Assembly: GCA_037447605.1 (NCBI GenBank)
Contig: CM074813.1
Span: 1,302,001-1,366,000 of the forward strand
Length of the DNA: 64,000 nt
Origin: Zygnema circumcarinatum SAG 698-1b
Taxonomy: Eukaryota > Plantae > Zygnematophyceae
Direction of reading: 5' to 3'
In this document: positions 8,040-54,200 of the stretch, one piece after another
How the letters are laid out: every line of letters begins with the position of its first letter
Numbering within the stretch: the stretch's first letter is position 1
The notes under the pieces: model-generated
Seen by the model: only the letters and a program-made list of their open reading frames with translations
Databases searched by the model: none
Told to the model about the DNA's origin: nothing
Program-made: the position numbers and the translations under genes

Positions 8040-8130
8040 GGAGGGAGAGGGAGAGGGAGAGGGAGGGGGAGGGGGGGGGGGGGGGGNNNNNNNNNNAAGG
8101 GAGGACGAACGAGACAGATAGAGAGCGAGC
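8040..8130. repeat. GA/G-rich microsatellite with 10-N assembly gap (8087-8096)
   Basis: Directly visible. Confidence 0.9.
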
Positions 8131-15338: not shown

Positions 15339-15393
<55 letters not shown>

Positions 15394-22100: not shown

Positions 22101-22586
22101 CTCCGCCAAGCGCTCCGCACCATGCGATCGAAGCGCCACCGCGGAGGCCGTCGCCAGCCGTCCGCCGGAGCCATCGGACGGCTGCGACCGGCGGCGCCAA
22201 GGACTACGGGGGGCGGAGCCGTCGGACCCATCTGGACCGTCCGTCAGAGCATCTGGACGGCGGAGCGCGGTGCCAGTGAGGCAGGCAGCCCGCCCTCCCC
22301 TCCCGCGCCTTGAAAGCCGGGCGCGCCCCACCGCCGTCTCTGACCGCGAGCGAACGCCTTCTGCTTCCCGCCTTCCTTGCAAAGTGCCTGCCCGCCTGTC
22401 TGCCTGCCTGAAGCGCCCTCTGCTTCGAGGTCCTCGCTTCCTGCGACAGCCGGAGAGCCAGCCTGCCAGCCTCCTGTCGTCGCAGCAGCAAGCGGAGTCG
22501 GAGGACTGGTTAGAGTGCCAATAAAAGAGCTCCTGCAGCAGAGCCCAGCGGCTGCAAGGGATTCAAAAGGTCGCTGCACATATAGC

Positions 22587-24940
22587 ATGTCGCTGGTGTG
22601 CTTTCCATTCAAGGAAGAGGATGTCACAGTCGCCGTGCGCAACGTAGAAACTGCCGCCTCTCACCCCCGTGTCGCTGCCGTGCTCTGCGTGGGATTCTCG
22701 CGAGGGGAGACATGGCATGCCATTGAAAGCAACGTGCCTGCAATTGAGAAGCGCACTGGCAAGAAGGTCTTTCTAGTTTTGCAGAAACGCCTCGGCTTTA
22801 ACCTCCGTGGTGGCAAGGGCGATGGAATGAACACAGCCTTAACCTTTTTTTTGGAACACGCAGAGTATCCCCGCCTCCACTTCTATGATGCCGACATCGT
22901 ATCTTTCTCATGCGAATGGATCACCAAGGCGGAGAAGCAGGCTGACTTGGACTTCGATGTCGTCCGCCACTACTTCCCGCGCTCTAGCACTGATGCTATG
23001 ATCACCTGGTTTGTCACAAAAATCGGATTTGCGCTACTATGGCCGAACTCCGTTCTTCCGCACATCGAGCAGCCTCTGGGAGGGGAACTCCTTCTGTCCC
23101 GCAGGGCTGCGGAGATCCTCGCGTCCGATCAGAGAGTGCGCTCTCAGAGCGACTGGGGCATCGACACGCTGTACACGTTCGTGTCGGCGCAAGCGGGCCT
23201 CAGGGTGGCCGAGGTCTACATCCCTGAAGGAAAGGTCCACGCTCTCTATGGCGGCCTGCGCGACCTGCGCACGATGCTGGTCGAGTGCTTCTCAGCCATG
23301 CAGGTTGGTGGCCGGGTTTCTTAATATTGGAGTTTATGGCGCGTCGAATGGTGTTGAGTGTTTTCGATGGTGCTGTGCGTTCCCGATTGAGGACTGACTA
23401 TTCTGGTGAACACGCTTAACATATCTTAGAGATGCTTGGTAATTGACTCGCTTTCATCACCTAGTAGTCCTTTCAACGACTGGAAGGAAGTAGTCACCTG
23501 TTGCTCGTTAGTTGCTGCAGGATGCTTGAAAGTAGCTGAAATGGAAAGATTTTTCTGAATATGCAGACGTTGCGGAACGAGAAGATTGATGAGGCCGCCT
23601 TGCACCATGGAATTCATCGTATGGAAGCTTCCAAGTCTGTTCCGGAACTTGTGAAGCAGAAGATTGGCTACGATGTGGAGAAGACGCTGAAGCTTCTGCG
23701 TGACAACTGGACCCCTCGTCAGCGCGAGCTTTTGCAGCAGCACTTCGACCCTGCTCTTGCAAAGGTGGGTCGTCTTAACTGTATAGTGCTAAATGGATGC
23801 TGCATAATTTTGTATTTCGTTCATCGTTATCTTCGAAGCGCAAGTTTCTTGTTGGCTGCTGTTGGCTTGATTTGCTACCGTTCGTGGTTCAGGTTCATGG
23901 ACAGAGCACTGCTCTACAATTGTTTTGGCCCTTAATCGTTCAGATTACGATTTGAATTCTTCGGAGTCTATGAAGGTTGCCGCTTGTACAGTGCCTTTTT
24001 TGGTTATACATGGGGAGAGTATCTGACGTATCCGAATTTGCTGCAGGGCCTTCTTCTTGCGTCCGAGTGGCCATGCTGGTCATTCTGTGATGAAGAAGCC
24101 TGGGTCAATGCCTACGTCAAGTTTCTGGATAACTTTGAGAAAGGTGATGACGATTGGGAAGAGCTCCTCTTCAAGGTGTGGGTCTCGAGAGTGCTGAACC
24201 ACACACTACGGTGAGTAAATGTTCTTCCTCCTGTCATGGAGATGCAGACATTGGAGTCGTAGCGATTGAACTGTTCCTCAGTGGTTAACCGTTCCTTGAT
24301 GTTTTTTTTTTTATTAAAGTGATTTTCTCTGGATGCTAAGTTTTGCTTGTGCGATAATTTTTGCAGTCATGTGATGCGCGGGTACGACATAGCACTGGGG
24401 ACTCTGAGGGACCTTGTACGCGACACCCAGCACGCCTCAGCCATGCAGGTGTGTAAGATCGTCTGTTTGCACTGCTCGAGTAAACTTGTATTTAGGTACT
24501 TGCTTATCCCTGTAAATGTATCCTGAAACTAGAGACCTTCTGGTATACTTTTTTTGTGAGTCTGTATTTTCTGATGTGATTCGTGTGCCCGGCAGGCGGT
24601 TGTATGGACGGTGCCAGCTAGAGGAACCTGCTGCTAATCTGTCTGTCCCTGATTTTGACTAGGTGACAGGAGATTGTTCCATTAACTGCTTTTTTTTTGG
24701 CGGTGAATGCCCATGGATGCGGCGTCCAGGCCTGGGGTTGCGTTAGAACGTAGCTGACTTAGATGGAAAATTGGGTGGTTTGTGGAACAGCTGAAAGCAG
24801 CGGCTGCTGTTGCCTCACAGCCTCTATCGGCAGGACATTCTGCTGTGGAAGGAAAGGCGCATGGGCCACAGTCAAGGAAGAAAGGGAAGTGGAGTTTGAC
24901 CGCAGGTGTGGCCGGCGTGAACATCGTCGTTCAGCCGTGA
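22587..24940 (+). CDS. mgs: Mannosylglycerate synthase (GT78); exons 22587-23303, 23567-23764, 24048-24209, 24367-24448, probable last exon 24791-24940
   Basis: Near-collinear with recalled Rhodothermus marinus MGS: MSLVCFPFK, GKGDGMNTAL, HFYDADI, VRHYFPRSSTDAMITW, IEQPLGGELL, SDWGIDTLYTF, ALYGGLRDLRTMLVECF. Confidence 0.93.
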
Positions 24941-27900: not shown

Positions 27901-28519
27901 CCACTATGCTTCTCCAAAGGTGTGTAACCATCCCTTCTGTGAAACAAATTGGCAGGCCGAGGTATTTGAAGAGCAAGAAAAACAAGAGCAATAAGCAAAA
28001 CTCAACATAATGCACAGAAATTCATTCAAAGCATTGGAAATCACATCAGTGAGTAAATATCAAACATGTAAACACAACGTCATACCCCAAAAAGTTTGCA
28101 ATACTGGAATTTTCACTTGTCCTCAAAATATCGTTTGCTCTCGCTAGTCCTTCATCCATGTCTGACGAGAAATGAGTTCCCATGTCTGACAAGTTTTGCC
28201 CGAAGCCTAGATCGGCAGTTGTTTCATTGCATTGCCGTGCCAATTTTTTAACAGCGGAAGGTCTAACACAATCGACAAAGCACGATATGAAACATCATTT
28301 CACGGACACGATGGCGGTTGTAGCATTCTAATGCATCTGAAACCTTTATTTGTACCATGCGCAGGAGGAAGTTACATCTCCTGCTACAAATTCTGTAAGC
28401 AGCACAAATTGTGTAGGATGGTACCACAAAGAAAATTCTCTCGGGAACAAAAAGTTTGAGGGCCAGAGAGAGCTTTGCCGGTATGAAGAGTCATACGTTG
28501 CGGCTGAATGGAAGACTCC

Positions 28520-28636
28520 CAGAGAAAAAGAGAGAGAGGGGGGAGAGAGAGAGAGAGAGGGAGAGAGAGAGAGGAGAGAGAGAGAAAGGGAGCGAGAGAA
28601 AGAGCGAGAGAGAGAGAGGGAGGCAGAGAGAGAGAC
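28520..28636. repeat. (GA)n microsatellite
   Basis: Directly visible. Confidence 0.9.
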
Positions 28637-28931
28637 GGCCCATGTGGCTCCGTAATCTGACTTCATCACCGCGGCCCGAAGAGAGCGAACTCAGCTGGAC
28701 CCCTCGAAAAAACTCGGCGCACAGCTCCTCAAAGCTGTGGCCTTACAACTGCTTTGCTTCCAGCAGACTTGGCTTCCTTCGGGCAGAAAGTGATGCTAAC
28801 TTTGAATTAATGAAGACGGCAGGATTTCAATCTTACCATCATCTGCTACAAAACTACCTTGTCCTCCTACTGAGACCCCTACTGCTTTACCAGATTCATC
28901 TAATGAACCGCGCCCCCTCCATCCTTCCACG

Positions 28932-31900
28932 TCACCTCCGGCGTCTCTCCTTCCAATATTCAGAGTCTCTATGGCTTCTCTTGTCTCGTTCTTTCCTCAT
29001 GTTGTTGTAGGTTTCTCTTGCCAAATCTCTCCACATAGTTCCTAACAACCTATCGACATCACTCGAGTCGTCTCCTTCCACCACCTCAAGAAGCTTTCTC
29101 CTTCCCTCTCCCGTTCCCTTCTCTGATAACCTTTCCTCCCTAACGCTATCTTCCCCTTTATTTCCTGCAGCCTCTACAGACTCAGCAATGGTTTGTAACG
29201 TCTGAAGTACCTCTCGCGCATCTGCCTTAGTTGTCCCATCCACTATTTTCGCCACCTCCGCCTGTACCGTTAAAGCCTTTCCCGTCCCCTCAAGATCTGC
29301 AGCAACGTCTGCTGCCACTTTCTCCACCTTTTCAGCCTTCTCTCCTCCCTCTACCCCGTTTTCCACATTGTTTATCTGGTCTTCAGGTAAAGTGGAAGTC
29401 TTTTCTACGCTTCGGAGAGCACTCGGAGGCGGGCTCTTGGGTAAAGGCCAAGGAGTTCTCTTTGCTGGAACAACAATTGGCAGTTCGGGTATTTGCCACC
29501 TGACACCACATGTGACCGATTCAAAAGGTTAGGGGCTCTCGCACAAGAGGCATACAGCCAGGACCCCCCGGCTTTGTCAACATAATTGCTGTTCAGACTT
29601 CTTCACAAGCACTCTCGACTGTGTTTCAATATGAATTGAAGGCACTATTACGTTTGGAGTCGGTCCTCCAATCTTGGCACCCAATGAGCGATGACTAGAC
29701 AAGCGCTCTGACCTAGTGCTTCATGCAGGTTTTCAGTTTATAGTATGTTCATCAGTCGTCATAATGTGCAATAACTCAATGATTTGTGCGTGGAAACCAA
29801 CCCTCTAGGAGTTGTTGAGGCCAGCGAAAGAGGGACAAAAAGGGGAGCTCCATTTCCCGGACTGAATGCAGATTGGACAATGCAAACTGACCTGCTGTAA
29901 AACCTGCTATCTCCGCGAGCCTCAGCCCTCATCCACCATCCGAGCACTTCCTTCCCACAGGCCCCTAAGGGCTCCACATTCATCTCGTCCACAAGCATAC
30001 GTTTCAACAAGTCTCCAGCTGCGGTCTGATGCACTCCAACACTATTGAACTGCCTGTCGACAGCCTTACTGTCTGCCCATTCCTCCCATCTCCGAACCCA
30101 CGATGGCCTCTCACTACTGTCGTCTACATGTGGCACAGTTCCCGCTCCAAACTGATGCCTTATCCTGTGATCCGAGTCATCCCATAGGAGGCGCGAATTG
30201 AGAACAAAGCTTCCCCAGACCATCTGCATTCTCTCAGCCTCGATGTTTATCTCCTCCCCATAGTGAGGGAGTCCCTCCGCTACCTGCTGGGGTGAGTGCA
30301 GCATGGTGTGCCAGCCTGACAATGACCCGTTCTCATTGCATACGGGGCTTTGAATTGGCATACGTAAACTCTTTTGGTTGCTCTCCAAGGGGACTTTCTT
30401 TTTGTTCTCCTCAGCACCACCTCCAAAAATATCTGTAAACCCTGTTTGAAGCAGAATGCTGATTGCTGCTGCCCCAAACCATCTAACCTTTTGAGCCTCT
30501 TCGAAGAACTTTGGGGAGAAGACGGAGCTATCATCTGCGAATAATACGAGGCCGTCCATTCGCGTCTCTCGAACGTACCTGCAAATGTTACCGATAAATT
30601 TACGTCACAACAGCCGTTGCAGAAATACAATTGAACAGACTCTCCGTCGAAGGAATATTGCAGAAAAATACAATGTCGTAGTTGCGTTTATGTGAGCTCT
30701 ATTTTGCAGACCATGACCTACAATTATGGGGCGTTCTTAATAAACTTAATCTTGTTTTGATTGCGATGAGGGAGAAAAACTGCAAAGCACTATCAGCCAA
30801 CGACTAATAATTCCCTGGCTGTTGCAAGCAATGTCATGTCATGTAATGTAATGTCATGTCATGTCATGTCATATCTACGAATACTGCCCATGGGTGAAAG
30901 AGCCAAACAGTATGGTTTTTCACAGCTCTTTGGAACTCAAACGATATAACAAGTGCCTACGCTCTTATCCAGGTTCAGACAGCCCACACGCCCCTCCTTT
31001 CTAAAAGGTGTTTAAGCTAGAGAAACAATTGTCTCGGAAAGAGACTAAGAAAAGCGATCGCCGATAAATGGCAGCCACAAAATTCTGCTCTTACATGAAA
31101 GGAGAGTAACCTTTTGACGACTGTTTCATGGGTAAAACCCCTTTGAACATATGTTCGAAAACTTCAACTCACCTGAGCCCTAACTCTCGCATGTGAACTT
31201 CCGTAAGCCACCTTTCCTCCCACGCCTCTGGCATTTCGCTTCCATACTCTAAATGAACAAAACCTAATCCCGACTGCTGAAGAATGGCTGCAGTATCATT
31301 TGTTCGACGGGGCGCCTCAATCACAACCCAAAGCAAGGGGGCTCGCGCTCGTTTCAAAGAATTCACCAGACCAATCATATGAACAGTCTGAAAAGTACGC
31401 ATAAATGTTGGAGTTATTGCAATCAAAAGCCTTGGAGGATAAATGGAGGACGCCCGATGCTGGCGCTCTTGCAAAAGATCAAGCAGTTCATGTGCCAGTA
31501 CCACCTGATAAGGGTCTGGATGGGGATAATCTCTAATGAGAATTCCATGGCGGCCCACTCTGCTACCCCCTCTTACTCCTTTTTCATCCTCATGTCCTGT
31601 CTCCAACTCAAGCTGCTTATCGCTGCTCTCTTCATCCCAAAAGAGCATATCTCTATGAAGTGGTCGATGTGGATCAGGCAAGTCCGTCTGGATTGCTTGG
31701 CGAGAACCGCCCAAAGCACCCTCTCTCAAGACACCAATTCGTCCTTCCTGAATGGTTGTTTCGCTCCCCCCCAACAAGAGGATCTTCCCCTCCCTCGCTA
31801 AGCGGAACCCAATCAGCATAAATGCGCAGCACGCTGCGAGGTGGAGGAGCCATGGAGCTGCTGCCCTCACCCCGGAGAGAACAAGGAGGTTCTTTGCGCT

Positions 31901-32050
31901 CTCAATTTGTCTCCCAGCTGCAGCTTTCAGATTTACTGTGCGCCGGCCCATATCCCGAGTGGCTTCTGGCTCTCCTTTCCTTCCTCGCCTTACCCGGATA
32001 TTGTGTGCACGGCCCTCCTCCGCAGCAAGAGAATTTACAGCTGCCCTCAT
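28932..32050 (-). CDS. IRX14: GT43 xylan-synthesis glycosyltransferase, IRX14/IRX14L-like; exons 32050-31173, 30578-29892, 29499-28932
   Basis: Type II TM segment; GRHGILIRDYPHPDP, IAITPTFMRTFQ, LLWVVIEA, DGLVLFADDS, PLGACGKEVLGWWMRAEARGDS and VPAKRTPWP match the IRX14 clade. Confidence 0.9.
30831..30872. repeat. (ATGTC/ATGTA)n pentanucleotide repeat, intronic
   Basis: Directly visible. Confidence 0.9.
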
Positions 32051-32849
32051 GTGCCTTGGCACCTATACATCTTCTGCAGACCAGTTGAAGTCCGCAGCAC
32101 CTCACGGAACAGAAAAGCATATGTCCCTTGTCGGAAGGTGACAACCTGCAGAGCAATATAGGGTTCTCCTGGAGGAGATTGCAGGCGTTACCATGCGGAA
32201 AGTTTGCAGCGCTTTAATGGCCTTTGTAAGGCCATGCAGTATATCACTGGAAGAGATTCAGCTTCCTAATGGAAGATCGGCACGAGAGACTTGATTACCG
32301 CTTGAAACCGCCAATGCAAAAGGAAACTACGAGAGCGACAGCTCCTCATGCTGCACCTGACCCTGCCGTCGCCCTAATGCCAGAACATGATCACCAAACA
32401 TTCATCACTTCTCATCCTTTCTCTCAGCCACTCAGTCGCTTCTGCGAAACCGCTCCATACGAAAGACGCTTCCTTCCTTTTTAACGCCACGCCACCCCTG
32501 CCCTAACCCTAACTCTAACCCTAAAATCTCCGACCACCACTCCAAACCCTTCTCCCTCTCCTCTCTTTCCTCCTCCCTCCTCCCTCTGCCTCCGTCTCTC
32601 CCCCCTGATACGCGCCTCCTCCTCCCTCCCCCAGCGCGTATCCCGTATTTTCCAAGGCCTAGATTATTGACCGCCCTGCCGCCTGCCCGCCCGCCCCGCC
32701 CCGCTCCGGCCCTCTGCAGGCAGCGAAGCGCGCCTTCCTCCTCCTCCAACACCTCCCTCAGCACCTGCACCACCAGCAGCAGCAGCAGCGGCAGGCGCAG
32801 GGCCAGAGCGGGAGGGACGGACGGACGGACGGAACGGGCACGGGCACGG

Positions 32850-35897: not shown

Positions 35898-38800
35898 CTA
35901 AGGCTTGGGAGTGATGTTCCTGCGCTCAAGGAAGCTGACCAGCTGCCTGTGTGAACGGATGCTGATGATGTCTTCCCAGAGCGCTCTCCTGCATCACATA
36001 CGCATGGGCCTTAGCATTACCACATCACATTAGCTTAACTCACTGAACGGAGGTAGGGTTGCTGGGGTTGATGGTCAGTTTTCACAAGTAAGCACATACA
36101 TGCTCGTGGGTGGGTCTTCATATTCTTTACATACAAAAGATGTGGTTTTTTCAGGCAAAGAGCAAGTAAGCCGAAGAAAGAAAGAAATGAACCCATTCGG
36201 TGGTGGCGACCCTTCAGCATTTATTGGCAGTCATCATGCTTTAGGTGTAGCCAGCTTTTGATAGTACCTCTTCTCGCTAAAGAGGAGCTCGGAGGTAACA
36301 AAACTTGTCAAGATTGCGAGGCCGATCATTTCCAAGCCGCCTTGCCCTGCAAATAGCAATAGCAGGATGCCACATCAGCTCAAGGAAGTAGATGGGAAGG
36401 ATAAATTCTCTGCAATGGAATAAGCTGCCCATGGTTCATTGTTCATGGTCTGCATGAACCATGGGCCCATGGAGACCCATGGTTCGGGTGTTGCAAAAAC
36501 CCTAACCTGGCCCTAGACATACCCCTCGGCAAAATCGCAATACGCGAGTCAGCGACTCTTTACAAGCTACAAATGCTCTTCAATAAACTTTTGAAAGCCC
36601 TAAGACAAACCAAGCCTAGCTGCACAACACGAGCAAGTACTTTTCCCCTGCAAAAGAAAACCAATGACGGAAAATCGAAGATGAGCAGCAAGTTGCTAGT
36701 CCAAGTTTAGGCACATGTATGGGCTTTTAAACCCACAGCCGTCAAACTTGCTTCTGCATCATGACTTCTGCATCCGGACAGCAGTATAAACAAATGCCCA
36801 TACGTTCAATGGTTCGCATGTTCCTTCAAATGTATACAGTAGCACACAGCCCATTAGTCACTTGTCCGGCCGGGGGAAGGGAGGGGGGGGGGTAGAGGGG
36901 GGGCGATATACATCCTGCAGTGAAGGTGGCCGCAGCTCCAGCTCCAACTGCAGCCACTGCTGGCGTGACACGTGGTACAGCCCTGACATTTTCTCCCATA
37001 TTTACCTGCAGAGGGAGGAAGCAGGGTGACCGTACAAGCTCTTGTTAGTTCTGCACTTACAACATAGAGTCAACCAACATACATCGGCATAGAGCTGATA
37101 AACTACTCGATAGCCCAATGCTGCTGATACAGGTCCAATGGCAACCACTAAATAAAAATCACCGGATAGCGCTTGTAAACAGCAGCAAAGACGCAGTAGG
37201 CATTTCTGCTGTTGCTGTCATTTTTTGTAACTTTCGGAGACAAACCAGCGAATAAGTAAGGCTCGGCTTCTGGACCATCAACAGGGAAAGCTCTTCACCA
37301 GAAGCAGAACCATGCCATGCTACTAAGGAGTCGTACAAAACAAGTGGTAAAAGTGTTGAGTAGAAAAAACGCAAGCTACGAAACTTAAAAAAAGCACGAG
37401 GAGAACGCCAACGAGACAATGGTGATTCAGCTGAGACAGTCTCCCTCAACTGACATTATAACCCATGTTTAAAAAGCCCACAAACTGACCACTCCCGGAT
37501 GTGCAGAAGCTTGCAAAACTCACTGGCCCGAATACTTACTGAGTCAGTTGCTCCTATTGGATCTTCAGGCTCCTCTCGCACTCCCTCCTGCTTCTCAGGA
37601 GCCATCATCTTCTCCAACACCTCTACTGCAAAGGCGGATGACGATTGTGAGGGTGAACTTGTGCCCTCACTTTCACTATCTAACGACGCACCGAGAGGCT
37701 CCTCCAAGAGTATCGGCGGCGTATCAAATGGTGAATCGAAACGAAGGCTGTATGCAGCAGGTTTGCTCAGAGATGCAGTCTGCAGGTTCAGACCGATTGA
37801 AGCTTCTTTCAGCCCACCATTTGAACTCTCCTCACTGCTCTTTGGAGCTGCTTCCTCTGGTTTAGGCACTACTGCTTCCTTCCCTAAGGACGATAAACTC
37901 TGCTCAACTTCAGCATCCTTCACCTTTTCAGATTCAATCGCAGCAGCAAAAGGTCGGACAGCAGGCGGGGATTGAGGACTAGATTCCGCCAAAAAGCCCG
38001 GTGTAGCATATCGAGCCGAATAATATGACAGCGAAGATATCGGAGAAATCTTCGGTTCATCCGGTAAGTCTGGTTTTGGCAAGTCGACATTGAACCCGGG
38101 TGTAGCGTACGTAGCCGGATAATACGACAGGGAAGCCATTGGCTCCTCTGTGTCCAATACTTTAGGCAAGCCAACAGTGGATTTGACTTCCACTTCCCTT
38201 CCTTCAGGTGTCTGCAAGTCGTTTGGCACGTTGACAGCGGTCTTAGACATATCAATGGTTGAGGTTGTGGGTGCCACTGTGTTCTCCTTCAAATCATCTG
38301 CCAAGCCTCCGTCTGGGTTCACTGCAGGAGGTAGGTCAGACCCCCCTCCTGACGAATTTGGAGGAAACCCCTGTTTATCTTTGTGCTCCTTTTTCATGTC
38401 ACGCTTCAGTAGCCCGAAAAGTCCAATAAGCACCAAAAGGACCCCAAGAAGGAGAACTTGAAGGCCAGCTTTGCTCCATGGTCCACTCTTTGGAGAGCTT
38501 GTAGGTGGAGGAGGGGAGCTGCTTGCACCAAACCACTGCTTGCCAGTGAGTGCTTTTGGATGGCTCACAGGAGGTGGAGTTGAGGCTTTGTGGACGACGA
38601 TTCGATCTGCAAGCTCTTTTGGAGCCTCGCCACGCCAAGCTTCTTTGGGGACCTTCAAGAACTTTCCCACCTGAATGGCGTTTACGTCTGCGATCTGGTT
38701 GACTGCTGTCCACTCGCTCACTTTGCTGTTGAACTTGTCTGCCAGCTCACTGAGGGTATCTTTGGCTCTAACTTCTAGAAACACTTCTTCGGAGTCAGCT

Positions 38801-40185
38801 TCAGGTGCAACGGGAACCTGACAAGCAGAAGCAAAGCTCATCGAAGTAGCATCAGAATCAAGCACATGAAGGGACAATTAAGAAGTTAACTGATGTGCAA
38901 GTGCGCTCAATGCATTATTTCTGCCACACGATCTGTCATACTACAAGTAGTTCTTGTGGTCGCCTTAAGAGGAGCTGAATTACCAACAAATAACTTTGGA
39001 AGTAAACAGATCTGATATGAACTGTGCGCAATTGTTTTCTCCGAGATGGGATGTTATTTTGAAGATAAAGAACATAACAGGACGTCAGTCCGGTCACCGC
39101 TGTTGTATACCATCACTCAACACTAGAAATGTACGTGTATAGGTGCCCTCATTCAAATACTTACCTCAACTGCATGACTTGTTCGCACATTTAAAAGGTA
39201 AACCTGCCACTTTTATCCCTGCCCTTCTTAAACCAAATTCTGAATGCACCTTCCTACGGCTGCGGACATCGTTTGGAAAAGAAGCTGAAGGCATTCCTTC
39301 TCCGTTGCTAAGTAAAGCAGCATTGGGGTTGAGAACAATTCATTCTGGTGGATGTGCTATGGGAAAAAAGAGCAAACGAAATAGGATGCTTTCAAGAAAA
39401 AACACCACCTACATTTATTAAAATGCCAATGAATTCACTCTACTAGCGCAAGACCTACTTATTACAAGCAAAGGCTATACTTAGCGACTCCTCCATAGCC
39501 CATATTAAACAGTAGAGAAGGCGGAGTCTGCATTCCCTTCTTCCGCACGAACTCCTCCTGTTTATTTTCTTGATGCAAGCAATGCTAACGTTACAACCAT
39601 TCACCCCTTCTCCAAATTTTCTTGCTGAAACTCTACTCACGCCTTAAGACGAACTTATTCTCGGTACAATGACTCCTTTAAAGCCCATGGTATCCTCATA
39701 AGATAAATATAGAGAAGGAGAGAGGGAAAGAGGAGGGAAGGAGAAGAGACGAAGGGGTCTACCTCACGCCATTTCACCAACAGGATACATTTATAAGGTT
39801 CTGCATGCTCGCAGTGCAGGAGAACTTTCAGGACCTAAAAGATGAATACCTCGCTTTCTGCACGCGGCGCCATTACCCTCGTCCCCTTCGCTGACGGGCG
39901 CTGTCCTCTAGGCTGCAGCAAGTTCCTCTTTAAAGAAGAGCCCATAAAGCTGCCTCTAATAGAAAGCGCCCAAACTTTAATTTTTTTCTGGGATTGCAAC
40001 GTTCTCAGCCGACCGTTCAAGAGCTGTTGCGGAGATAATTGATACTTGGGCAACAATTCCCTGCACCCAGAAACTTGCAGTGATGCAGACCTATTCGCAA
40101 GGGTTGCATTCTGGCAAGCAGACTGTGCTGCAGGCGTTCCAGGAGCCAGCCAATTAACCGACTTGGACACCACTGGCGCCTGCAT
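35898..40185 (-). CDS. Predicted chloroplast protein (~625 aa): transit peptide - LysM - TM - disordered linker - CURT1/CAAD-like hairpin; exons 40185-39850, 38817-37540, 37005-36912, 36346-36268, 35988-35898
   Basis: Four GT-AG introns join in frame (phases 0,0,1,2). Exon 1 is basic, S/A-rich and contains RGSFMGSSL. LysM: LEVRAKDTLSELADKFNSKVSEWTAVNQIADVNAIQVGKFLKVP. TM: GLQVLLLGVLLVLIGLFGLL. C-terminal: GLEMIGLAILTSFVTSELLFSEKRRALWEDI. Confidence 0.8.
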
Positions 40186-42545
40186 CTTTGCAGTTCCCGA
40201 TACGAGAAAGGCTTCCAAATGCACAAATTACTTCAGAATTGATCAATTTTTCAATTCCTAGCTTTAGCTCCGCCAGACTATTGCCCCTGAAAACAGAATC
40301 TACCCTCCCTCCTGCAATTACTGGAATGCAGGTGTCTACAGAAGCCTTCCCTTAGAGAGGGAGGACGAGGGAGAAGGCCAATGGCTCGAGTTCAAGGACG
40401 ATTGTCAGGTCCACATGGAAAATTCAACTCGAGGACGATATCTGAAACCGACGGAGCCGATCCACTTTTGCGCCAATCAGCGGCCAGAAAGTGCGGATCG
40501 GCCGTCAGCGATCAACCAAGAGCCGGCGACCTAGATCAACAGATGGATCGCGAGATATTAACCAGCAGGTAGATCCGACGATATTTCAGCAAGGTGGATC
40601 CCCATCGGACCGTTGGTCGGCGTTGACCCTCGCGGCCGCTGATTGGCCGCCTTGAGCATTTTTTGGATCAGCCTAGAGGCATGTCGTTACGTGACGCGAC
40701 AGAACGTCACGCCGCTCCTAGTCCTCGGGTGGTTGCGAGTTGTGCTCGCGCGAGATGGCTCAAAGCCGGAGAGGGGAAAGAATTTCAAAGGAATAATGCT
40801 GCGCCAGTGAATGGAATTAGAGTCACAAAGGCTGCCTTGTAGGGTATCATGTGTTGTTGTGGGACTGCCCATGACTACGAAACGAAACGACTGCTTGACA
40901 ATGACGACAATCGAGTGGTTCCACATGCAATTCTCGCATAGTCGTTTCGGTATGGTCTGAGCCTACAGTCTGCAGGAGGTCAAACACCCGTTTATACCTC
41001 GTCTGCATGAGGCTTCTGTCGACTAAACATGTCAAACGCCTGCTACAACGAGTGCTGGTGACAATGAGAGGGCTGACCTTTATTTACAACCACGTGAACC
41101 ATCAACCATCCGATTGATGGTTCTGAACATAGTGAGCATTAAGCTCACTGTCTTATGCATTGACCATTACTACGAAGCACGTGTGCTTTTAGAAAATTTT
41201 CTAACAAAACGAGGGCTGTAGACCCACAATACCCGCGAACTGCATGCCCGTAGTCGATACAACAGCCCAAATGGGCTGTACTCCATATTCCATGGCCCAA
41301 CATGCATACTCCACAAGATGATTTTCATACATGTACGCGCTTATAGTTTCAATAGAAGACCAAGGGCAGAGGGTAGATGTATGTTTCACACAAACAACCG
41401 TTGACCTCCGTTCCGTTTGAATATTTGAAAGTTATGGAGGACATCGGTATGGAGTGGAGAGATAGGGGGTATTGACTTAGGGGGTCCTGCTGTACAGATT
41501 GCAGAATCACTGGGCAGGCAGCACATTGTAACGAACTGGCGGGCTATCCACAAGTGAGAGATAGCAAGAAAACGTTGCCCTCAAGGACCCACATGGCCCA
41601 AATGAAATCTCATGAGGTTGGTATGACTGCAGCAGTCTGCATGCCTTCGCTATATTGCCTTTGAGCTTCAGGAGGCAAGCTAATGTTTTGTTCCCACGTG
41701 TATGGCGACTATGGGAAACCGACGATACTGATGCCCTGTGTGCATCACCCAACTACTGTGACGGAAGTTTCATCAATAGTGTTGGATCCAGTAAATCGAC
41801 ACCAGCACTCAAGACACGCTAAGGAACGGGCAGGGTTGGACAGGTAAGATTCCCAACTGAGGCTTGCTGGGCACTGGCAAGATTCTCATTGTGTCTGTTA
41901 GTCCTCGTCATGTCATCGACTAGCGGAATGAACTCGCTGTGACCCTGTGATTCTTGCTGATAAGCAGTGGATACGCAAGGAAAGACACAAAATTACAAAT
42001 ACCTAGCCAGAGATTAGTCCTGGCATGACCATGCAAATGCCCCGACCATTTACAAGGGAGAAAAAACACTACTGGGTATCACCAGTTGAATAGTACTTCA
42101 TGTTATGTATAAAACAAGGTATTGTGTGTGGTTACTCCGTGACTCTAGTAATCCCTCCACGAACCTACAAGGGCATTAGTTTAGCTGCACTTCCCCCATA
42201 ACATTTTTTTGCTCCTGCCCTTACAATGCCAATTCTAGCCTATGAGTCGATGCAATGAGCAGAACCAACCTCCGGAACATTTTCTCACCAGCCCTGACAA
42301 AAGACTTGTCCACTTTTTGAAAAGTGAAAAACACAATTCTTTTTGCTGCAATATTCAATATTTGATCAACTCAACCTCTTCGTACTCATAAGAAGAGACC
42401 CAGAAACCTCACTCTTTCTGGTCGTGGCGCACACATCAACACGTAGACTATAAATGAGCACCATGAACCACGACGCATGTCTGCTTCCATTCCGTCCCTG
42501 AAACGATTCAATTGTCTTTCCTATCCACATTTTTTCTTGCCGGGA

Positions 42546-44304
<1,759 letters not shown>

Positions 44305-44965: not shown

Positions 44966-45200
44966 GCTCACCAGCTGTTTGGCAGCGCAGGCACAGCCTT
45001 GAATGCTATCAGTAATAATGTCTGGTGCGTAAGGGCAATTTGACCCATTGAAGGTTCATTCGGGCCCGCATCTGTTGGCGTCCTTTGTTGTGGCTTCCTT
45101 TATTGTTGGTGACTGCAGCTCTTTTTTTTTTACAAGTAGCAACATACAACTTGTTTGCTTTATCGAGTTTTCCTTCCAAGCAATCTTCGAGAAACAAGTC

Positions 45201-48200
45201 ATGGATACTGCCAAGCGAAGGTTTCCAGGATCGTCTCCACCACCTGCGAAGCGTGTCAACGATGGAGGAGTGAAAGGGCCGATTGGAGGGTATGGAGGCC
45301 CTGATTTGGACGAAGATGTGGAAGAGGAAGAGGAGCTTTACGACGAAGATGTGTATTATGAAAATGCGCTGTTGCGCGGGGTAGAAGCTGACAGTCTGGG
45401 TATCGAATCTGTCGCGAAGACACTCCAGAATTGGAGTAGACCCCCGGTGGAAGAATTTGACTATGCAACGACGCCAATAGGTGATGTCCTTTTCGAACGA
45501 AACAGAAACAGGGTGTAAATCTAATTTGGCCATTCTTCGAATTCAGAACGTCTACAGAGAAAGATGAGGTGGATGACGCAAAGCTAAATAGTAGTATACT
45601 ATAGTTTTAGCTTAAGCTGCAAGAACGTAAAATCAAACGTAAAATTTGACCATCACGAGAAGCAGCTAGAAACACTGATCAATTTGGCCGAGCCATTTTG
45701 AACGATACCAAACCACTCCTTCTCACTGGGACCTGCATGCCATCACCTCCGAATAAAAGACATACCTTGTCTACAGAGGCAGCAACTTAAATTTATATGA
45801 TTTTGAAGGTCAAGCTGTTTGAGCTTTAGTACAAATGTTTGAAAGAACACCGATCAGATGGATAAGCTAGAGCTAAGCTACGTCTAGGCAAATTCATTTG
45901 AACAAGACTATCTAGCAGTTTGAATTCACGTTCTCAGCAAAGCATATACCTTTTGTGAAAGTTTTAGTTTTCGCCAATCGGCTTAAGCAAGTAAGCTTGC
46001 TGCTTTCTTGCGCAACAAACATGTGGGAAGCGTGGTTCGAGTCTTTGATGCGGCCTTTGGTTGGAGAAGTAGTAGCAGATGGACTGCAGCTCTCCAGTTT
46101 GTCGCTGGTGGTGGCACCCGTGACTCATATACATGCACCATAGTCACGCCCGAAAGCAAAACATGAGGGATGTTTTTGATATTGACGGCCACAAATTGGA
46201 AGTCATGTGGGTCACTTGCATTACAGCCATCGTGGTTTGGTCCATTCTACTGAGCAGAGCCAGCATATGAGCGCAGCTTTGGATGAGCAAACGACTTCAA
46301 AAGCACTATTTCCTGTGAAGAAGATTTCTTATGGGGTTGGCTGAATGAAGAATCTGCATTGTTCCATAGAGCGGCTGTTTGTCTTGCTTGAGTAATGACC
46401 CTGGTTTCTAAAACTGGCCGTAAATAAGAGCACACGATCAAGGAAAGGAGCAGTCAGAAGGAAAAAGCAGGCTTGTGGCTCCGCCTAAACCAGCACTTTT
46501 GTTTTGTTCATGGTTGTCGTTTGCAGTTTTCCAGCAACTGGAAATTGACTATGTAATCGGGAAGAGCTCCAATTTGCTTCCAAAGAGAACAACCCCTTCT
46601 GCTATTCTGCGCATCTTTGGTGTGACAGAAAAAGGTGCGCACCTTGCAGCAAGGATGTAAAGAGTTTAGGAATTTGACCAACCATAAGACTGCCGTGTAG
46701 CTTTTCCATTCGCGTTTGCATAGTCCTTGTTGCCTAAGTGAACGAGTTAGTGCCTGTCATGGTGGGACATAATCATTCCATGTGATGTTGATAAGTTCAT
46801 AAGATGATACCTGTTATATTGAGGCAGACCTGTGAAGGGTAATAGGATTAGATGTTTGTGCATGCGTGTTGATGTGCATTTTGGACGATTGATTGCCGTA
46901 GTGCTTGTCCATAGTACGGAACAATTCAATCAACTCGGAATGATCAGCTCAAAATTTTGAAGTAGAATACATGTTAACAAACTCGATTGCTTTGTTCTCA
47001 GCATGACGGAGCACAAATTATTTGCTAACAAGTGTGCTCATTTTTTCCTTGTCAAGCTCCTAGTCATCACTGTGTATCGCTAAGGTGCGCATGCACGGTG
47101 CACGATGAGTGAATGTTATTAAACACATGACGACTCTGCTATGTACACCTTTTGCGTCACCTCGTTCATGCAATTTTTTTTTCTGATAGTTTCCAGCACA
47201 AACCGGATATTGGAGCAGGAAATAGCGTCTGCGTGCTAGTGCATGGATTTGAACCATACTTCTATGTTCGAGCTCCTGCTTACTGCAACCCTGATGATGT
47301 GGACACGTTTCGCCGTGCACTCGAGGTATGCTTCTGGGCTTCATAGCCAGCGTGCCTTTTTGTTATCTATTATCATTGGTCGCAAGAAAATAAAGACAGC
47401 CTGCGTTTACTCTCGCCGTACTTTCTATGTAGTTTATCTGTACGGTGAAAGAATTAAAGTTAAAGGACACCTTGTCATGTGGGGAAGGCTCTGTACAGGC
47501 GGCTATGAGTCAGGCTTCGAAGGGACAAAACAATGGAAAATTTGTTACAAATGTGGAGCTTGTGGATCGCCAGAGTGTCATGAATTATCAAGCTGAAAAA
47601 ACTGCTAACTTCTTCAAAATCACCATGGCCCTGCCATCAATGGTCGCTACTTGCCGAGGTTGGCTCCTCACTTTCTGCATTCATTGGCTACATTGGCATC
47701 CAGCGGCGCTGTTTGGTCAATTTGCACAAGATGGACGTATGTTTGCAGTGGACAAAGATGAGGTGGATAACACAGCAGGCTCAACAGTTGCTTGGTTTTT
47801 ATTCTTAGGAAGTAAGTAGTAGGAACTACTAATTAAGTAGGAACTAGGCCAAGCTGGAAGAAGTGGAAGGAGAATGAAAGGGAGTGGACGATTGCACAAT
47901 GCTGATAGTGGCTCATAAGACCACCTGATTAAGGTTATAGTTGACAGGAGTCGGGATTGAGAATATCCTGGCTGCTGGATGCTTTATTCGCAGGTATTTT
48001 GGAGAGAGGTTTTCCCTGGGGTAACCACATGGGCATTCCACAAGTTACCTATGAGAGCAATGTGGTATTCGCTCTGCGGTTTATGATTGATAACAGTATT
48101 TCTGGCGGCAACTGGATAGAGCTCCCTCCGGGATCATATAGCCGTCCAGAAAAGCCCATTTCGTGGTGTCAGCTGGAATTCGACATCTTGTATCCCCTCC

Positions 48201-51200
48201 GACCTTTCCTTGGAATCTAACAATCACTTACCATTGAAGCCTTACGCGTCCATGTTAAAAGGGAGTCCATCACGCTTTTGTTCGTGGCATGCCATCATAA
48301 GAGTCCAGAAATTGTATGCATAATCGACATATAGGTGGCAAAGAGCAGATGCAAGGTGTTTCAACTGTACGTGGTCTGTTGCAGTGAGAATATAGAAGGC
48401 GTAAAATTACAGCCGCACTATGATCCGAGAATGTTGACTGTTGTTGTTGTACTCATACTACCGCTGTATAACAGGATTGCTTTGCATGGATGAATATCAG
48501 TTTAAGCTTCAAAGGTTCTGTTTCCTTGACGGTTGAGGTAAGGTGGCACAAACTTGTGAGCCATCCAGCCACCGGTCAGTGGTCGAGAATGGCTCCTTTT
48601 CGTATTCTCAGTTTTGACATTGAGTGTTCGGGGCGGAAAGGGCATTTCCCTGAGCCTGACAAGGACCCCGTAATCCAAGTGAGCACCCCGTTCCTCAACA
48701 TTTTGGACCTTGGCGATAGGGGTCTTGTTATAAATGAGCGAAGTGGAGTGGACGGGGACAATAACAACAATTGTCGGACCAATTTATTGTGCGGATTGTG
48801 GGCCTTGGACGGTGCAGATTGCAAACCTGGTGACACTACAAGGAGAAAGTCGGCCTCTGTTAAGGAATGTCATGACGCTTGGGAGCTGCGCATCCATTAC
48901 AGGCGCAGACATTTTGTCGTTTGAGAAGGAGGAGGAGGTGCTACTGGCCTGGCGGGTAATGCTGCTCTATCGCTTTTCTTTGGTTAGCAGGCAGGTTTAC
49001 AACTGTGTTAGTATTGGAGATTTCTTTCCATTAAAAGAAGAAGGGCAAGGTTAGTGACGGCTTGCAAAGCCATCTACTCCAAGCCATGTTGGATTTTCCA
49101 TGTCACGATGAGTTTCTCTCTGAAGCTACTTACACAGTCTGCTTCGACAAATAGAGATGATACAGGTTGTCTTTTCATATCACCACTATCCTGGGATCTA
49201 CAAAAAGTTGGCGAGCAACAGCCACTCAAAGGTTGTATGTCTCCATCTTAAACGACGAATTTCATGGATCATGGTGCAGGACTTCGTGCAAAAGGTGGAC
49301 CCAGACATAATAATCGGTTATAATATTTGCAAGTTTGATCTGCCATATCTCATAGAGGTACGCCAAGGTGCAGGTCGACTTGTCTTGCTTGATTGTCAGT
49401 CGATAAACACAGCAAACCGGTTCTTGTGTTTGAGGTGTGCTTTCAAGTGAAAGCCGGCCTTGGAAACCTGAAGACTTTGGTATAGTTTGTTGATTTAAAT
49501 TTTCAATCGAGGGCAGTTCACTTAAAGTTTTTATCGTGCGCTTGCCTTCCAAAATTGCCTTTCGGAGGAAGAAAAAAAAAGAAAGAAAGTAAGAAAGGAA
49601 AGACAGGAGGAGAAACGTCGATCATGTGTACGATTTGTTCTAAGTTTGTGAGCACGGCATTCACAAATAGCGCGAGTGTGATTATTTAATGTGGCAGAGG
49701 GCAGAAACGCTCAAGATTGCAGCATTTAAGCTGCTTGGAAGGATACGCGGAAGCGCTTTGCGAATGCGCGACCAGAAATTTTCTTCAAGGTGCGATGCAG
49801 GCCATTAGCTGCACCGAGAGATGGATAAACCTTCTCATAGAGTTGATGCAGCTCTGCCTGCATCCATTTGGGAAGGCACTGGTGTCGGCTCAGCTGCAAG
49901 GAAATCTTGGGTCTGCTTCAAAAAGGAGATCAAAGACCTAAATGCGAGGGGGCAGGGGCTTGTAGTTGCTTTGACTAAATAGTGCTTCACATCACATGTA
50001 TGCTGTAGGAGTAAGCTTGGCAAAATCTTAATACGGAGGCATGTGTCAAACGCGGATTGGAGTCTCCTTAAGAGTGTGCCAGTTGGCCTGAAATGCAACT
50101 TGGGTTGGTTTTATGTGCTTGCCGGAGCATCCCAGGCAGTACGGCGTACGCGAAAGCAAAGAGGTGACCATAGAAGGACGGGTGCAGTTGGACTTGCTGC
50201 AGGCCATTCAGCGCGACTACAAGCTTTCGTCTTACTCTCTCAACTCTGTCTCCGCGCATTTCCTGAAAGAGCAGGTGCCGCTTTCCTGAAGTTCTCGCAT
50301 TCAGCTTGTACAGATGTGTGTCTGAGATTAGGGAGCATCCGTTTATCGGAGAGTGAGCAAAGAGCTTTTGCATGAGTTCTTTCCTTGTCATGGTAGTGTA
50401 AGTTCTTTGGTGCTACAGGCATTCTTTATTGATTGAGCACTTACTTGGACACTTCAGAGCGCAGCTTGAAGATACAGCAGGTGTAAAGACACAATGAGGA
50501 TGAGTTTCCTATACTGCTTGTCACGGCTTGAAGTGATTTTATGACGTTTCCCGAGCTTGTCAGTGGTGATTCACATAACTTTTCCAGCCTTTGCCAGGAC
50601 CCATTCTTTCTGGCTGGTAATGAGAAAGAGTACTTCCGCGGAGGTTGGAGCAGAAGGAGGACGTGCACCACTCCATCATTTCAGACCTTCAGAGGGGCTC
50701 TGCTGAAACACGGCGTCGCCTTGCTGTCTACTGCCTCAAGGTGTGCTTTTCCCCTTACATCCTTTCACACTTCTTTCGTTATGTTCATAGTTCCCCTTTC
50801 AGTTTTAGGACCTGTATCTGGAAGCAGTGTTCTCAGCTTCGTTCGGTGAGGTCATGAATCTCAGAAGCGGTAGACCCCTCCACACTACTTATTACCTTTC
50901 ATTAGGCCGCTTGAACGAGGATTTGCAATGAAAGTTTTTCTGCTTGGTTTGGGCAGGACGCCTATCTCCCGCAGCGTCTTCTTGACAAGCTGAAGTACGT
51001 CTTCAATTATGTGGAAATGGCACGCGTGACAGGTGTTCCGATCGCCTTCCTCCTTGCCCGAGGCCAAAGCATCAAGGTATTAGCTCATGAAATATTGCGT
51101 AGAACGCAGGAGCGGCGTCTTGGTTGAGAAACCTTCCAAGCACTTTATGGTTTGACAAGTTTAGCCTTTGGTGTAGTGTAAGTGCACTCGCTGGAAATCA

Positions 51201-54200
51201 GGTGAAGGATCATTAGAGCGGTCCTTTCAGCCAAAAGGGGAGGATGTCCGCTGGTAGGGATTAGATGGTGGACTGGATTAATTGCTGGAGGCACATGCAT
51301 GCGAGCAGGTGCTCTCTCAAATTCTGAGGAAGGCTCGGCAACGCAATCTGCTCATCCCCAATCTTAAAGTGCAGGGCGGTCCTGCAGAAACGTATGAAGG
51401 TGCAACGGTATGGAGCCAAATCTGGGACCCCGTATGCTTGAGGGACGTTTTTTGTACTCTTTGGTGAAGGTTGAAGGTTATTTTAGCTCTCCTTGCTGCT
51501 TCTGTTGAAGTAGAGGTAAGATGGGTGGTGGGTGTTACAACGCAGGTGCTTGAGCCAAAGCAGGGATACTACGAAAAGCCCGTTGCAACTCTAGACTTCG
51601 CCTCCCTGTACCCCTCCATCATGATGGCGCATAACCTTTGCTACTGCACTCTGGTAAGACCCTTTTGTTTATTTCTACGCAGCACGTTTCTTCCTCTGTG
51701 GCTGCAGGCTTGTCCTATCTTCCTGTATGAATCTTTGCGTGCATCCTGAAGGAGAACCTCTCTTGTTTGTTAAATTTTCTAATTTCATCCCAATTTGTGC
51801 CTGCTTCTGCAACTGCATGCAGGTGCCACGTGAGCAAGTGAACAGTTTGCCCCCCGATTGCGTCAGCCGGACTCCGACCGGAGATGTGTTTGTAAAGCCG
51901 TCTGTGACCAAGGTTGTGGCTCAATGCTGTCTTTTCTTAATTCATTTTTCTAAAATTAGAGTGTACAAGTTTAAGTGTGCCGGCTTTTTGTTTGACTGGC
52001 ATTTTCACTCTCGCCATGCGGCTCTTTTGTGCTTTTGGCTGAATTGAGGAGTGATGAGGCGGACTCTGATCACATGTGCTGCTGCATTGGCCATTCTCTA
52101 GGGCATTCTCCCGGAGATATTGGAAGAGTTGTTGGGCGCAAGAAAAAGAGCGAAAGCGGACCTCAAGGTGCCATGCTTCGCATTCACCTCCGCCTATTTG
52201 TGCTTGAAAGAATTTGAACTACAATTGCAGTAACCGAATATGTTGCAAAAATTTAACTTCCATTGAATTGGGAACAAGTGATCTTGATAAATCATCACTC
52301 CCACCCGTCCATTCCTCAAAAGTGATGAAACTATGCAAGTTTTGCTGTGATCTCCCCTCCCCCCTCCCCCCTCCCCCCCCCCCCAAAAACCCTTGGAAAG
52401 TCAAGTCGTTATCAAGGAAGGGCGTTATTCGGTTGCAGTGAATGAATGACACGAGCATCCCTGGCTGACCTTTTTTCTTTTCTTTTCTCGTTGTTGCGAG
52501 GATGATTGTGCAATTCAGGCGGCGACGGATCCCTTTGAGAAGGCAGTGCTGGATGGTCGCCAGCTGGCACTCAAGGTCAGTGCTTTAGCCTTGTAGACTC
52601 GGTCCTAGTGAGGTCTCTTTCAAGCGTTTTGCTAGGGTTTTCAGCTTAGCTTAGATATGGCAAAAACTGGAAAGGTATTGTTCGAGATGTGGATTGGGAG
52701 AATCTCTCTATGACACCATCAGCCACTCGGTTTTCATAAATTCTTTTGTTCGAATGGGTGAATTTTGTGCAATCCTTTGTCAATTTGTCGATAAATACAG
52801 CCCAGGTTGTTCTCGTGATATTCTGATTCGGTTTTAGACGTTGGACGTATTGTATGGCGTTTGGCTCATTTTTAAGGCTTCAAAGTTTTTAAGCCCGTCC
52901 ATGGCTGCTTGGAGGGCTGAGCAGATGAGTGCCAACTCTGTGTATGGCTTTACGGGAGCAACGGTGGGGGCTCTGCCCTGCTTGGAAATCTCCTCCAGTG
53001 TGACCGGCTATGGTGGGACTCTGCTGCCAAAGTCCGGGGGGGTAACTAGACTGCTTTGTTGCGGGACAATGTTGACTCACTTTGACTATCCTTGAAAGGA
53101 CTTAGTGGCCAGGGTTAGCCAAGTGATTGAGGCGGGAGAATCACTGCGTCATCATGCTAGCATGTACACATATGTGCGGCTTGAATACTTGTTTAAGATG
53201 TATGGGAGTCATACGTTGGATATTGGAAAGATGAATGGGGCCTGAGCTGTGCTGCGTTACGTGTTGCAGGGCGAGAGATGATAGAGCTGACGAGGCAGAA
53301 GGTGTTGGAGACATACAACATGAAGAACGGCTACTTACAGGATGCCGATGTAAGTTCGTCATATCCTTGAGCTGAAATTTGCTGATACGATGTTGCGCAT
53401 TTTAAAACCCTGTCATCAAGAGATTCGCTCCTTTTTTTGAACTCTATCAGTAAGGTAGGCTACAAAATTTTGGGTTTCCTGCTTCTCCCTCGCTGCACTC
53501 CAGAAAGCTTTCCTCCAGCTCCCAGCAATTTAATTAATAGCTATTGAAATTGTCAATCTGACAGAGGACGACTTTCGGTTCTTGAGTTGTCAGGTTGTAT
53601 ATGGTGATACGGACTCTGTGATGGTGAACTTTGGAGTGGAGGGTGTGGACGAAGCGATGAAGTTGGGGCAGGAGGCAGCTGAGCTCATCAGTTCCACCTT
53701 TCCAAAGGCAGGGCCCGTCATCATTCTCTTTTCACTGCTCACCTCTAACCTGGGGGGGTCTGAGCACTCCCACCTGTACGACTTAAGAAGGTGAAGCCTT
53801 TCATGTTAGCTCGTGAAGCCGCTGACATTCAATTTTTATCTGGTGGTTGTCTTGGTTGTGGGCAGCCAATCAAGCTGGAATTTGAGAAGGTGTATTTCCC
53901 ATACCTGCTTATCAGCAAGAAAAGATACGCAGGATTGCTCTGGACAAGCCCTGCGAAGTATGATAAGATGGATACCAAAGGTAGGCCTTTTCAAACAGTC
54001 GCACGTGCTCCCTGATGCAACAGGGATGTGGTTTGCATTTTTCATAAACGTCAGTGACCTTCCTCTTTTGTTCATGACTGATTTATCGCCAATCGCACAG
54101 CTGCAATCAGAGAGCATTAGCTTAGCCCTGCACTGAGAGCTGCTTAGAAGACTCTCCCTCAGCTGAGGCATGGTTGTCTGTGGCAGGTATTGAGACGGTG

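Follow-up and report, generated by a model that had tools for sequence, protein, structure and literature searches.

A five-exon gene of Zygnema circumcarinatum predicted to encode a plastid LysM membrane protein with a partly CAAD-like tail

In the present study, a stretch of 64,000 nucleotides from the zygnematophycean alga Zygnema circumcarinatum SAG 698-1b (GenBank assembly GCA_037447605.1, contig CM074813.1, positions 1,302,001 to 1,366,000 of the forward strand; hereafter the window, numbered from its first letter) was analysed for a gene lying on its minus strand between positions 35,898 and 40,185. Several findings have been obtained. First, five exons are joined into one gene for a predicted protein of about 625 amino acids (aa), a model that is confirmed within the limits of sequence evidence. 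Second, the protein carries a LysM domain which, judged by profile, predicted fold and conserved residues, is genuine and of the bacterial peptidoglycan-hydrolase type, followed by a transmembrane helix (TM1) and a long acidic arm. Third, the tail appears to be derived from the CAAD domain in its second half, where homology with helices H3 and H4 of CURT1/CurT is moderately shown. We tentatively propose, rating the idea a little short of an even chance, that the product is a nucleus-encoded inner-envelope protein of the plastid which links the envelope to plastid peptidoglycan, as a landmark or tether whose stromal arm bears a second anchor. The parts of the gene are as follows.

39850..40185, minus strand: exon 1, with the ATG at 40185 and a plastid-transit-peptide-like segment; 112 aa (103 aa with donor 39876)
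37540..38817, minus strand: exon 2, 426 aa, phase 0; LysM, Ser/Pro-rich stretch, TM1 and acidic linker
38644..38781, minus strand: single LysM domain, beta-alpha-alpha-beta, bacterial type (Pfam PF01476, AlphaFold2, Foldseek)
38464..38586, minus strand: Ser/Pro-rich stretch directly before TM1, a putative Tic40-like post-import signal
38407..38463, minus strand: TM1, a Leu-rich, Pro-free helix of 19 aa (mean Kyte-Doolittle (KD) value 2.8) with a K/R-rich patch after it
37540..38406, minus strand: acidic Pro/Ser-rich linker of ~290 aa, probably disordered, judging by composition
38092..38133, minus strand: linker motif copy 1, SLSYYxAxYATPGF (self-match)
37993..38034, minus strand: linker motif copy 2, 14 aa (self-match)
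37729..37752, minus strand: possible degenerate third copy, YSLRFDSP (weak; shuffle P=0.016, found post hoc)
36912..37005, minus strand: exon 3, an Ala/Gly-rich marginal helix (TM2 or re-entrant)
36268..36346, minus strand: exon 4, TM3, the putative homologue of CAAD/CurT helix H3
35898..35988, minus strand: exon 5, CAAD-like start of helix H4, then one more amphipathic helix, ending in the stop codon

All introns of the gene are GT-AG and the frame is kept throughout. The donor of exon 1 is ambiguous (39849 or 39876, each phase 0), and splicing is needed upstream of 39837-39835 because an in-frame stop stands there; a donor at 39767, located beyond this stop, was ruled out. The donor of exon 2 is GTAAGT at 37539, TGCAG lies directly before each of exons 3-5, and GT follows exons 3 and 4. 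With phases of 0, 1 and 2, exons 3, 4 and 5 continue in frame from exon 2 to a TAG at 35900-35898, giving a coding length of 1878 nt and a protein of 625 aa (616 aa if the donor 39876 is taken for exon 1). The acceptors of exons 2-5 fall in the 97.1-99.9th percentile of all minus-strand AG sites in the window, and the donors used in the 92-97.5th percentile of GT sites. Every open AG...GT chain 3' of exon 2 was then enumerated and scored, homology being ignored, with plant-like splice matrices (approximate values from general knowledge) and a codon model trained on other genes of the window only. The exon 3-4-5 parse ranked 1st, 2nd or 3rd of 5,969 open parses, varying with the exon penalty, and exon 3 was present in all of the top eight whatever the penalty. 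Codon scores were best in the annotated frame for five of the five exons, by a narrow margin in exon 5; for exon 2 the score was +49.6 in frame compared with -137 and -170 out of frame. Thus coordinates, phases, codon bias and ab initio rank agree on what an earlier note on this DNA had claimed, the in-frame splicing of three small 3' exons onto the LysM open reading frame. A perfect 14-bp inverted repeat with a CCAAT box (40472-40647) was also observed in what is presumably the promoter, upstream of the ATG.

All homology comparisons were made exon by exon. Exon 2 matches Pfam PF01476 with 25.3 bits (E=1.5e-5), above the curated cut-off of 20.9, and its matches in the PDB are the LysM domains of Ecp6, LytE and LytN. 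Of the hits retrieved, those that match best over a single domain are LysMs of 36-45% identity, the ones with names being peptidoglycan hydrolases of Firmicutes. In a 40-sequence alignment the four invariant LysM residues D, A, N and G are retained, while the near-invariant Gly before DTL is Lys, at a position that also varies among the bacterial LysMs compared. AlphaFold2 with this alignment gave a beta-alpha-alpha-beta fold (predicted local distance difference test score, pLDDT, 84.5), the single-sequence run being uninformative, and a Foldseek search with the model returned LysM domains as top matches (TM-score ~0.8). The LysM assignment of the earlier note is upheld by these results, and peptidoglycan would be the expected ligand of a domain of this type.

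The C-terminal tail agrees with CURT1/CAAD in part. Among the 24,736 models of Pfam, the sole match of exon 4 is CAAD (PF14159; E=0.022, 15 bits, profile positions 46-68 of 85), whereas TM1, which is more hydrophobic, gives no CAAD match; neither exon 3 nor exon 5, each compared with Pfam, gave one. The score of exon 4 is below the CAAD cut-off of 30.7 bits. Comparison of exon 4 with CAAD by hhalign gave E=0.042. CurT profiles were built from 112 cyanobacterial CurT/CAAD segments (six loci Pfam-confirmed), which were fetched by a degenerate H3-core pattern and are biased there, so that the derived P-values are indicative only. Against the position-specific scoring matrix of these segments, exon 4 scored at helix H3 with P=0.009 relative to window peptides and 0.028 relative to its own shuffles. 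When exon 5 was scored at the register that exon 4 fixes, it fitted the start of H4 with P=0.004-0.009, ranking 1-2 among ~80 offsets, and the Arg codon split between exons 4 and 5 corresponds to an invariant CurT Arg, which lies outside the fetch pattern. The further amphipathic helix of exon 5 has a hydrophobic moment of 0.67. H3 followed by H4 is thus found in register, with modest strength.

The first half of the tail behaves differently. In the H2 registers tested, exon 3 scored -8 to -23 bits; its hydrophobicity (1.38 KD) is below that of all 112 CurT H2 helices (1.89-3.05), and its Ala/Gly content is 53% against a CurT H2 maximum of 35%. The best register of exon 3 is the CurT loop plus H3 (shuffle P=0.004), a fit that may reflect internal duplication or convergence on small residues. 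The place of H1 before exon 3 is taken by a Pro-containing segment with a moment of 0.32, the best candidate (0.41) lying ~30 residues further upstream. The CURT1/CurT family is defined by H1, a pair of transmembrane helices and a helix at the C-terminus (PMC12462475); here neither a homologous hydrophobic H2 nor a clear amphipathic H1 directly before it was found. A full CURT1 module is therefore not supported and bending activity cannot be assumed. Of the module described in the earlier note, the last transmembrane helix (H3) and the start of the next (H4) have stood, and H2 and H1 have not. Its count of 13/31 identities is arithmetically right against the presumed CURT1A segment given there, and becomes 10/31 by eye against the 112-segment CurT consensus. 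A weaker likeness to the transmembrane region of TROL was also put forward in the earlier note.

Exon 1 contains 3% D/E, 15% K/R and 16% S/T and lacks a hydrophobic stretch (maximum KD19 0.33), so that no ER signal peptide is present. The claim of plastid targeting is borne out in that exon 1 is transit-peptide-like by composition, and import into the plastid may be predicted from it. Among the 58 aa before TM1 there are 11 P and 9 S. A Ser/Pro-rich domain adjacent to the transmembrane helix of Tic40 is necessary and sufficient for inner-envelope insertion from the stroma via SEC2 (PMC5853536). Taken together, this precedent, the Ser/Pro stretch before TM1 and the K/R patch after it therefore favour an orientation in which the LysM would lie across the membrane from the linker arm, the latter being stromal. 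The N-out part of the proposed topology holds in this sense, while these features do not tell the inner envelope from the thylakoid.

The arm itself is acidic (residues 153-426 of exon 2 hold 45 D/E and 20 K/R) and contains a repeated motif whose self-match score of 72 was reached by 0 of 200 shuffles. The two copies differ by six synonymous and two non-synonymous codon changes, and by this synonymous excess selection on the peptide is apparent. We read the motif, which the earlier note does not mention, as a docking site for a putative stromal partner. A search of the motif against the PDB (E<=10) gave nothing relevant, including no Tic62/TROL peptide or related chain, and nothing relevant was found in plasmids or viral contigs. 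The motif loosely resembles the FNR-binding repeats of Tic62/TROL, a likeness without PDB support. Copy 2 was also observed to continue as PGFL (38034-37987, minus strand), which loosely resembles the C-terminal core PxFL of FtsZ, again without PDB support.

Herein, we propose a sequence of steps by which such a protein might operate. First, exon 1 would act as a plastid transit peptide, as its composition suggests. Second, TM1 would be inserted after import into the inner envelope from the stroma, in the manner of Tic40 and SEC2, so that the LysM would come to lie in the intermembrane space, as suggested by the Ser/Pro stretch and by the positive charges that follow TM1. Third, the LysM would bind the GlcNAc-MurNAc (N-acetylglucosamine and N-acetylmuramic acid) strands of plastid peptidoglycan. 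Streptophytes retain peptidoglycan genes and the LysM-bearing DipM, and glaucophyte DipM is located in the intermembrane space (PMC4015805). Fourth, the acidic arm, with its apparently selected motif, might offer two or three copies to a stromal partner. Finally, the CAAD-derived hairpin may serve as a second anchor with a preference for curved membrane. CAAD fusions have arisen repeatedly, and proteins bearing the domain are anchored to the thylakoids of Anabaena and, in E. coli, to the plasma membrane (PMC4893482); among the cyanobacterial loci fetched here, fusions of CAAD with aminoacyl-tRNA synthetases recur. CAAD is in this respect a portable anchor, and the hairpin might therefore be held either by the same membrane as TM1 or by a thylakoid margin. 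The former version, in which the hairpin would enter the inner envelope that also holds TM1, or an invagination of it such as the division furrow, is possible, if rather on the unlikely side; CurT/CURT1 has been implicated in cell and chloroplast division (PMC12462475).

In searches for relatives, no orthologue of exon 2, taken whole or as the LysM region, was found among proteins of 234-745 aa sharing exact 5-mers. A search of 1.84 billion representatives gave only multi-LysM proteins among its best 150 matches, and none of these matched the CAAD profile significantly; an orthologue with a single LysM and a score below 55 bits would therefore have been masked. Metagenome and viral contigs yielded no orthologue, the lone match being a bacterial TM-LysM protein (L001); plasmids yielded none either, an exact look-up of the exon-2 reading frame was also blank, and a PDB search with exon 4 returned nothing relevant. 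These blanks probably reflect the absence of the lineage from the collections, which cover it thinly, because an exon of the neighbouring GT43 gene finds relatives at only 34-35% identity. As the earlier note had asserted, no protein with this architecture was described in the literature searched, which covered few subscription papers. An unconfirmed LysM-containing envelope protein of Physcomitrium, named CURL1, also bears on novelty.

Several observations weigh against the inner-envelope proposal. No Sec- or Tat-type signal is visible in the sequence after the transit peptide. The N-terminal tail of Tic40 is short, and the export of ~120 residues with a folded LysM far exceeds that case. The single-helix stop-transfer proteins ARC6 and APG1 are oriented opposite to the proposed TM1 (PMC5853536). 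The CAAD score of exon 4 is half of the gathering cut-off of 30.7 bits, and when the window was scanned in six frames with the cyanobacteria-only profile, exon 4 did not rise above the background and reached no better than third place (E~5). A role of the hairpin in curvature is weakened by the missing H1 and the aberrant H2. No Mur gene was found among the open reading frames scanned in the window, and conservation of the fusion is unsupported, no orthologue having been found in the collections searched. Moreover, in Chlamydomonas, where most peptidoglycan genes are missing, a LysM protein of the envelope, LMR1, occurs nonetheless and has been suggested to bind other glycans (bioRxiv 2022.05.31.493820), and an envelope LysM therefore need not imply peptidoglycan. 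The blank orthologue searches and a plastid location that is predicted from sequence also limit the significance of the proposal.

Among the other explanations, the one that survives best, though we consider it unlikely, places the whole protein in the thylakoid with a TROL-like layout, the LysM being lumenal, where it would bind another glycan or be vestigial, and the arm being stromal with repeated binding motifs. The pattern of positive charges suits thylakoid insertion equally well, TM1 is Leu-rich, a feature known from thylakoid helices, and Tic62/TROL likewise carry several copies of a linear motif on a Pro-rich arm in the stroma. On the other hand, a lumenal targeting signal is not visible in the sequence, we know of no lumenal GlcNAc polymer, the linker motif has no PDB match of the Tic62/TROL type at E<=10, and the core residues of the LysM are retained.

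The inner-envelope proposal also includes the version given in the earlier note, in which TM1 crosses the inner envelope and the hairpin sits in a thylakoid margin, so that relic peptidoglycan wall, envelope and curved thylakoid edges would be stapled together by one protein, as in the convergence zones of cyanobacteria. An arm of ~290 aa, if disordered, could bridge the membrane gap, CAAD takes fused proteins to the thylakoids of Anabaena (PMC4893482), and CurT is tied to convergence zones and division (PMC12462475). Against this, one chain would have to select two membranes, a hairpin without H1 or a proper H2 may have lost thylakoid-margin targeting, and three transmembrane helices in one membrane are simpler; we regard this version as distinctly unlikely.

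Still less probable, in our judgement, is stop-transfer insertion in the manner of ARC6, with the LysM in the stroma, where it would bind a stromal glycan or peptidoglycan precursors rather than the wall, the linker in the intermembrane space and the hairpin in the inner or outer envelope. This route is reported for several single-helix inner-envelope proteins, whose N-terminus is stromal and whose helix often has clustered Trp/Phe (PMC5853536). TM1 is strongly hydrophobic and Pro-free, which speaks for such a route, but it has no Trp and one Phe, the K/R residues stand after it rather than before it, and the Ser/Pro stretch is the post-import signature of Tic40.

Similarly improbable is a gene in which the 3' exons are not, or not all, joined to the LysM exon, the CAAD-like pieces being chance or remnant. 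The protein could then end through a competing terminal exon at 36647-36616 (minus strand) after exon 3, by read-through of intron 2 or by skipping of exon 3. The acceptor at 36647 is the strongest in the 3' region; its parse has a score about equal to that of the five-exon parse and ranks first at the strictest penalty. In addition, the CAG acceptor of exon 3 (37007-37000, minus strand) runs straight into GTAAAT, the best-scoring donor-like site of the region. Against these points, three successive exons are in frame with the right codon bias, the CAAD positions matched by exon 4 run on directly into those matched by exon 5 across the split Arg codon, and the read-through has a negative codon score. 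No promoter-like GC island or transit peptide of its own precedes exon 3, and a separate small gene starting from the ATG of exon 3 was ruled out on the same grounds. As a side observation, if the GTAAAT were used recursively or for skipping, exon 2 would be spliced to exon 4 in a shifted frame, and the resulting isoform would have a short tail and lack the hairpin. Finally, a mitochondrial or other endomembrane LysM protein is the least probable reading, basic and acid-free presequences being common to mitochondria, but the present one being long (~100 aa) and Ser-rich, without an ER signal peptide, and combined with a domain of cyanobacteria and plastids.

The proposal touches on two open questions, namely by what means the peptidoglycan of plastids is held to the envelope and how the partitioning of thylakoids is matched to constriction of the envelope, the latter having been called poorly understood (PMC13650779). 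To date, the plastid wall-associated LysM proteins that we found described are the hydrolase DipM and PPASP, a predicted outer-envelope protein. The LysM/CAAD-like protein might be added to these as a candidate inner-envelope wall anchor, possibly a wall-to-thylakoid link, and would, if true, represent a eukaryotic CAAD fusion of a kind without report in the literature searched. Were the link to the thylakoid correct, a wall-anchored streptophyte counterpart of the cyanobacterial convergence zones would exist and thylakoid partitioning would be coupled to wall-driven division, which would be categorically new.

The window surrounding the gene is eukaryotic, with short GT-AG introns and ~50% GC, and the following features were recognised in it.

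1110-2066: last exon of a beta-lactamase-like gene
5757-7788: dUTPase with a transit-peptide-like N-terminus
12253-15524: prolyl oligopeptidase
42878-43159: Rab7
~45000-57000: family-B DNA polymerase, delta-like by eye

A reading frame of 460 aa at 2964-4346 (minus strand) has no Pfam match and ends in LELTLRL, an EAR-like repression motif by eye. A mannosylglycerate synthase is encoded at 22377-23935 (plus strand; PF21969, E=2e-139); this is a compatible-solute enzyme of bacterial type with a patchy distribution in plants and algae, and horizontal acquisition of the gene is possible. The GT43 (IRX14-like) glycosyltransferase at ~28400-32062 (minus strand) has an extra acidic/charged C-terminal exon without Pfam match (28932-29366); of the relatives of the GT43 exon, only a plant IRX14 (35%) carries a name, and the gene bears on the early evolution of xylan synthesis. 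Two assembly gaps of 10 N each (898-907 and 8087-8096) lie far from the LysM gene.

Comparison with known systems shows both likeness and difference. The ungapped register over H3 and the start of H4, with the E, G, F, LL, R and L positions kept, is shared with CURT1/CurT/CAAD, and, as in GluRS-CAAD, the CAAD part would anchor a larger protein to a membrane by its C-terminal end. In contrast to CURT1/CurT/CAAD, the score here is sub-threshold, a short Ala/Gly helix stands where H2 would be, a clear H1 is missing, and the G-Y..W..RY core of the fetched CurT set is lost; judged by sequence, the protein is a LysM family member that is CURT1/CAAD-like in part only. The partner of the CAAD-like part, LysM with a transmembrane helix, occurs in none of the CAAD fusions checked. 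A CAAD fusion with a partner other than an aminoacyl-tRNA synthetase was observed separately in an Oculatellaceae cyanobacterium (L053:255-1244, minus strand), where CurT/CAAD is followed by a C-terminal polyketide-cyclase/START-like domain. DipM of glaucophytes, charophytes and mosses is likewise a nucleus-encoded plastid LysM protein and acts on plastid peptidoglycan, but it is a soluble LysM+M23 hydrolase (PMC4015805), whereas a catalytic domain is absent here and membrane helices number two or three; no exon gave an M23 match, and membership of DipM was ruled out. PPASP is a streptophyte protein with a transmembrane helix and LysM that co-occurs with the peptidoglycan pathway and has been proposed to contact the wall from an envelope membrane; it differs in having an N-terminal helix followed by a C-terminal LysM, no transit peptide and a proposed outer-envelope location (PMC4815162). 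The order found here is transit peptide, LysM, transmembrane helix, linker and hairpin, and with this opposite domain order and an exon 1 without hydrophobic helix, membership of PPASP was ruled out. LMR1 of Chlamydomonas is a LysM protein located at chloroplast-envelope patches, but has two LysMs and no reported CAAD (bioRxiv 2022.05.31.493820). The Ser/Pro-rich stretch beside a single transmembrane helix near the N-terminus is shared with Tic40 (PMC5853536). The region before the helix is far longer here and holds a folded domain, and no sequence relationship with Tic40 is claimed. TROL/Tic62 membership was ruled out by the lack of a rhodanese or NAD(P)-binding Pfam domain and of a match of the motif to an FNR-binding chain in the PDB. 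The polar landmark proteins FimV/HubP/TspA combine a periplasmic wall-binding LysM, a single transmembrane helix and a long acidic cytoplasmic arm with repeats. Their likeness is one of layout and analogy only, the tetratricopeptide repeat (TPR) end being absent here, and FimV/HubP membership was ruled out by the lack of a match to the NCBIfam models of the FimV core or C-terminus at E<=10. The layout of LysM, transmembrane helix, arm and CAAD-like tail would thus be a new combination of known parts.

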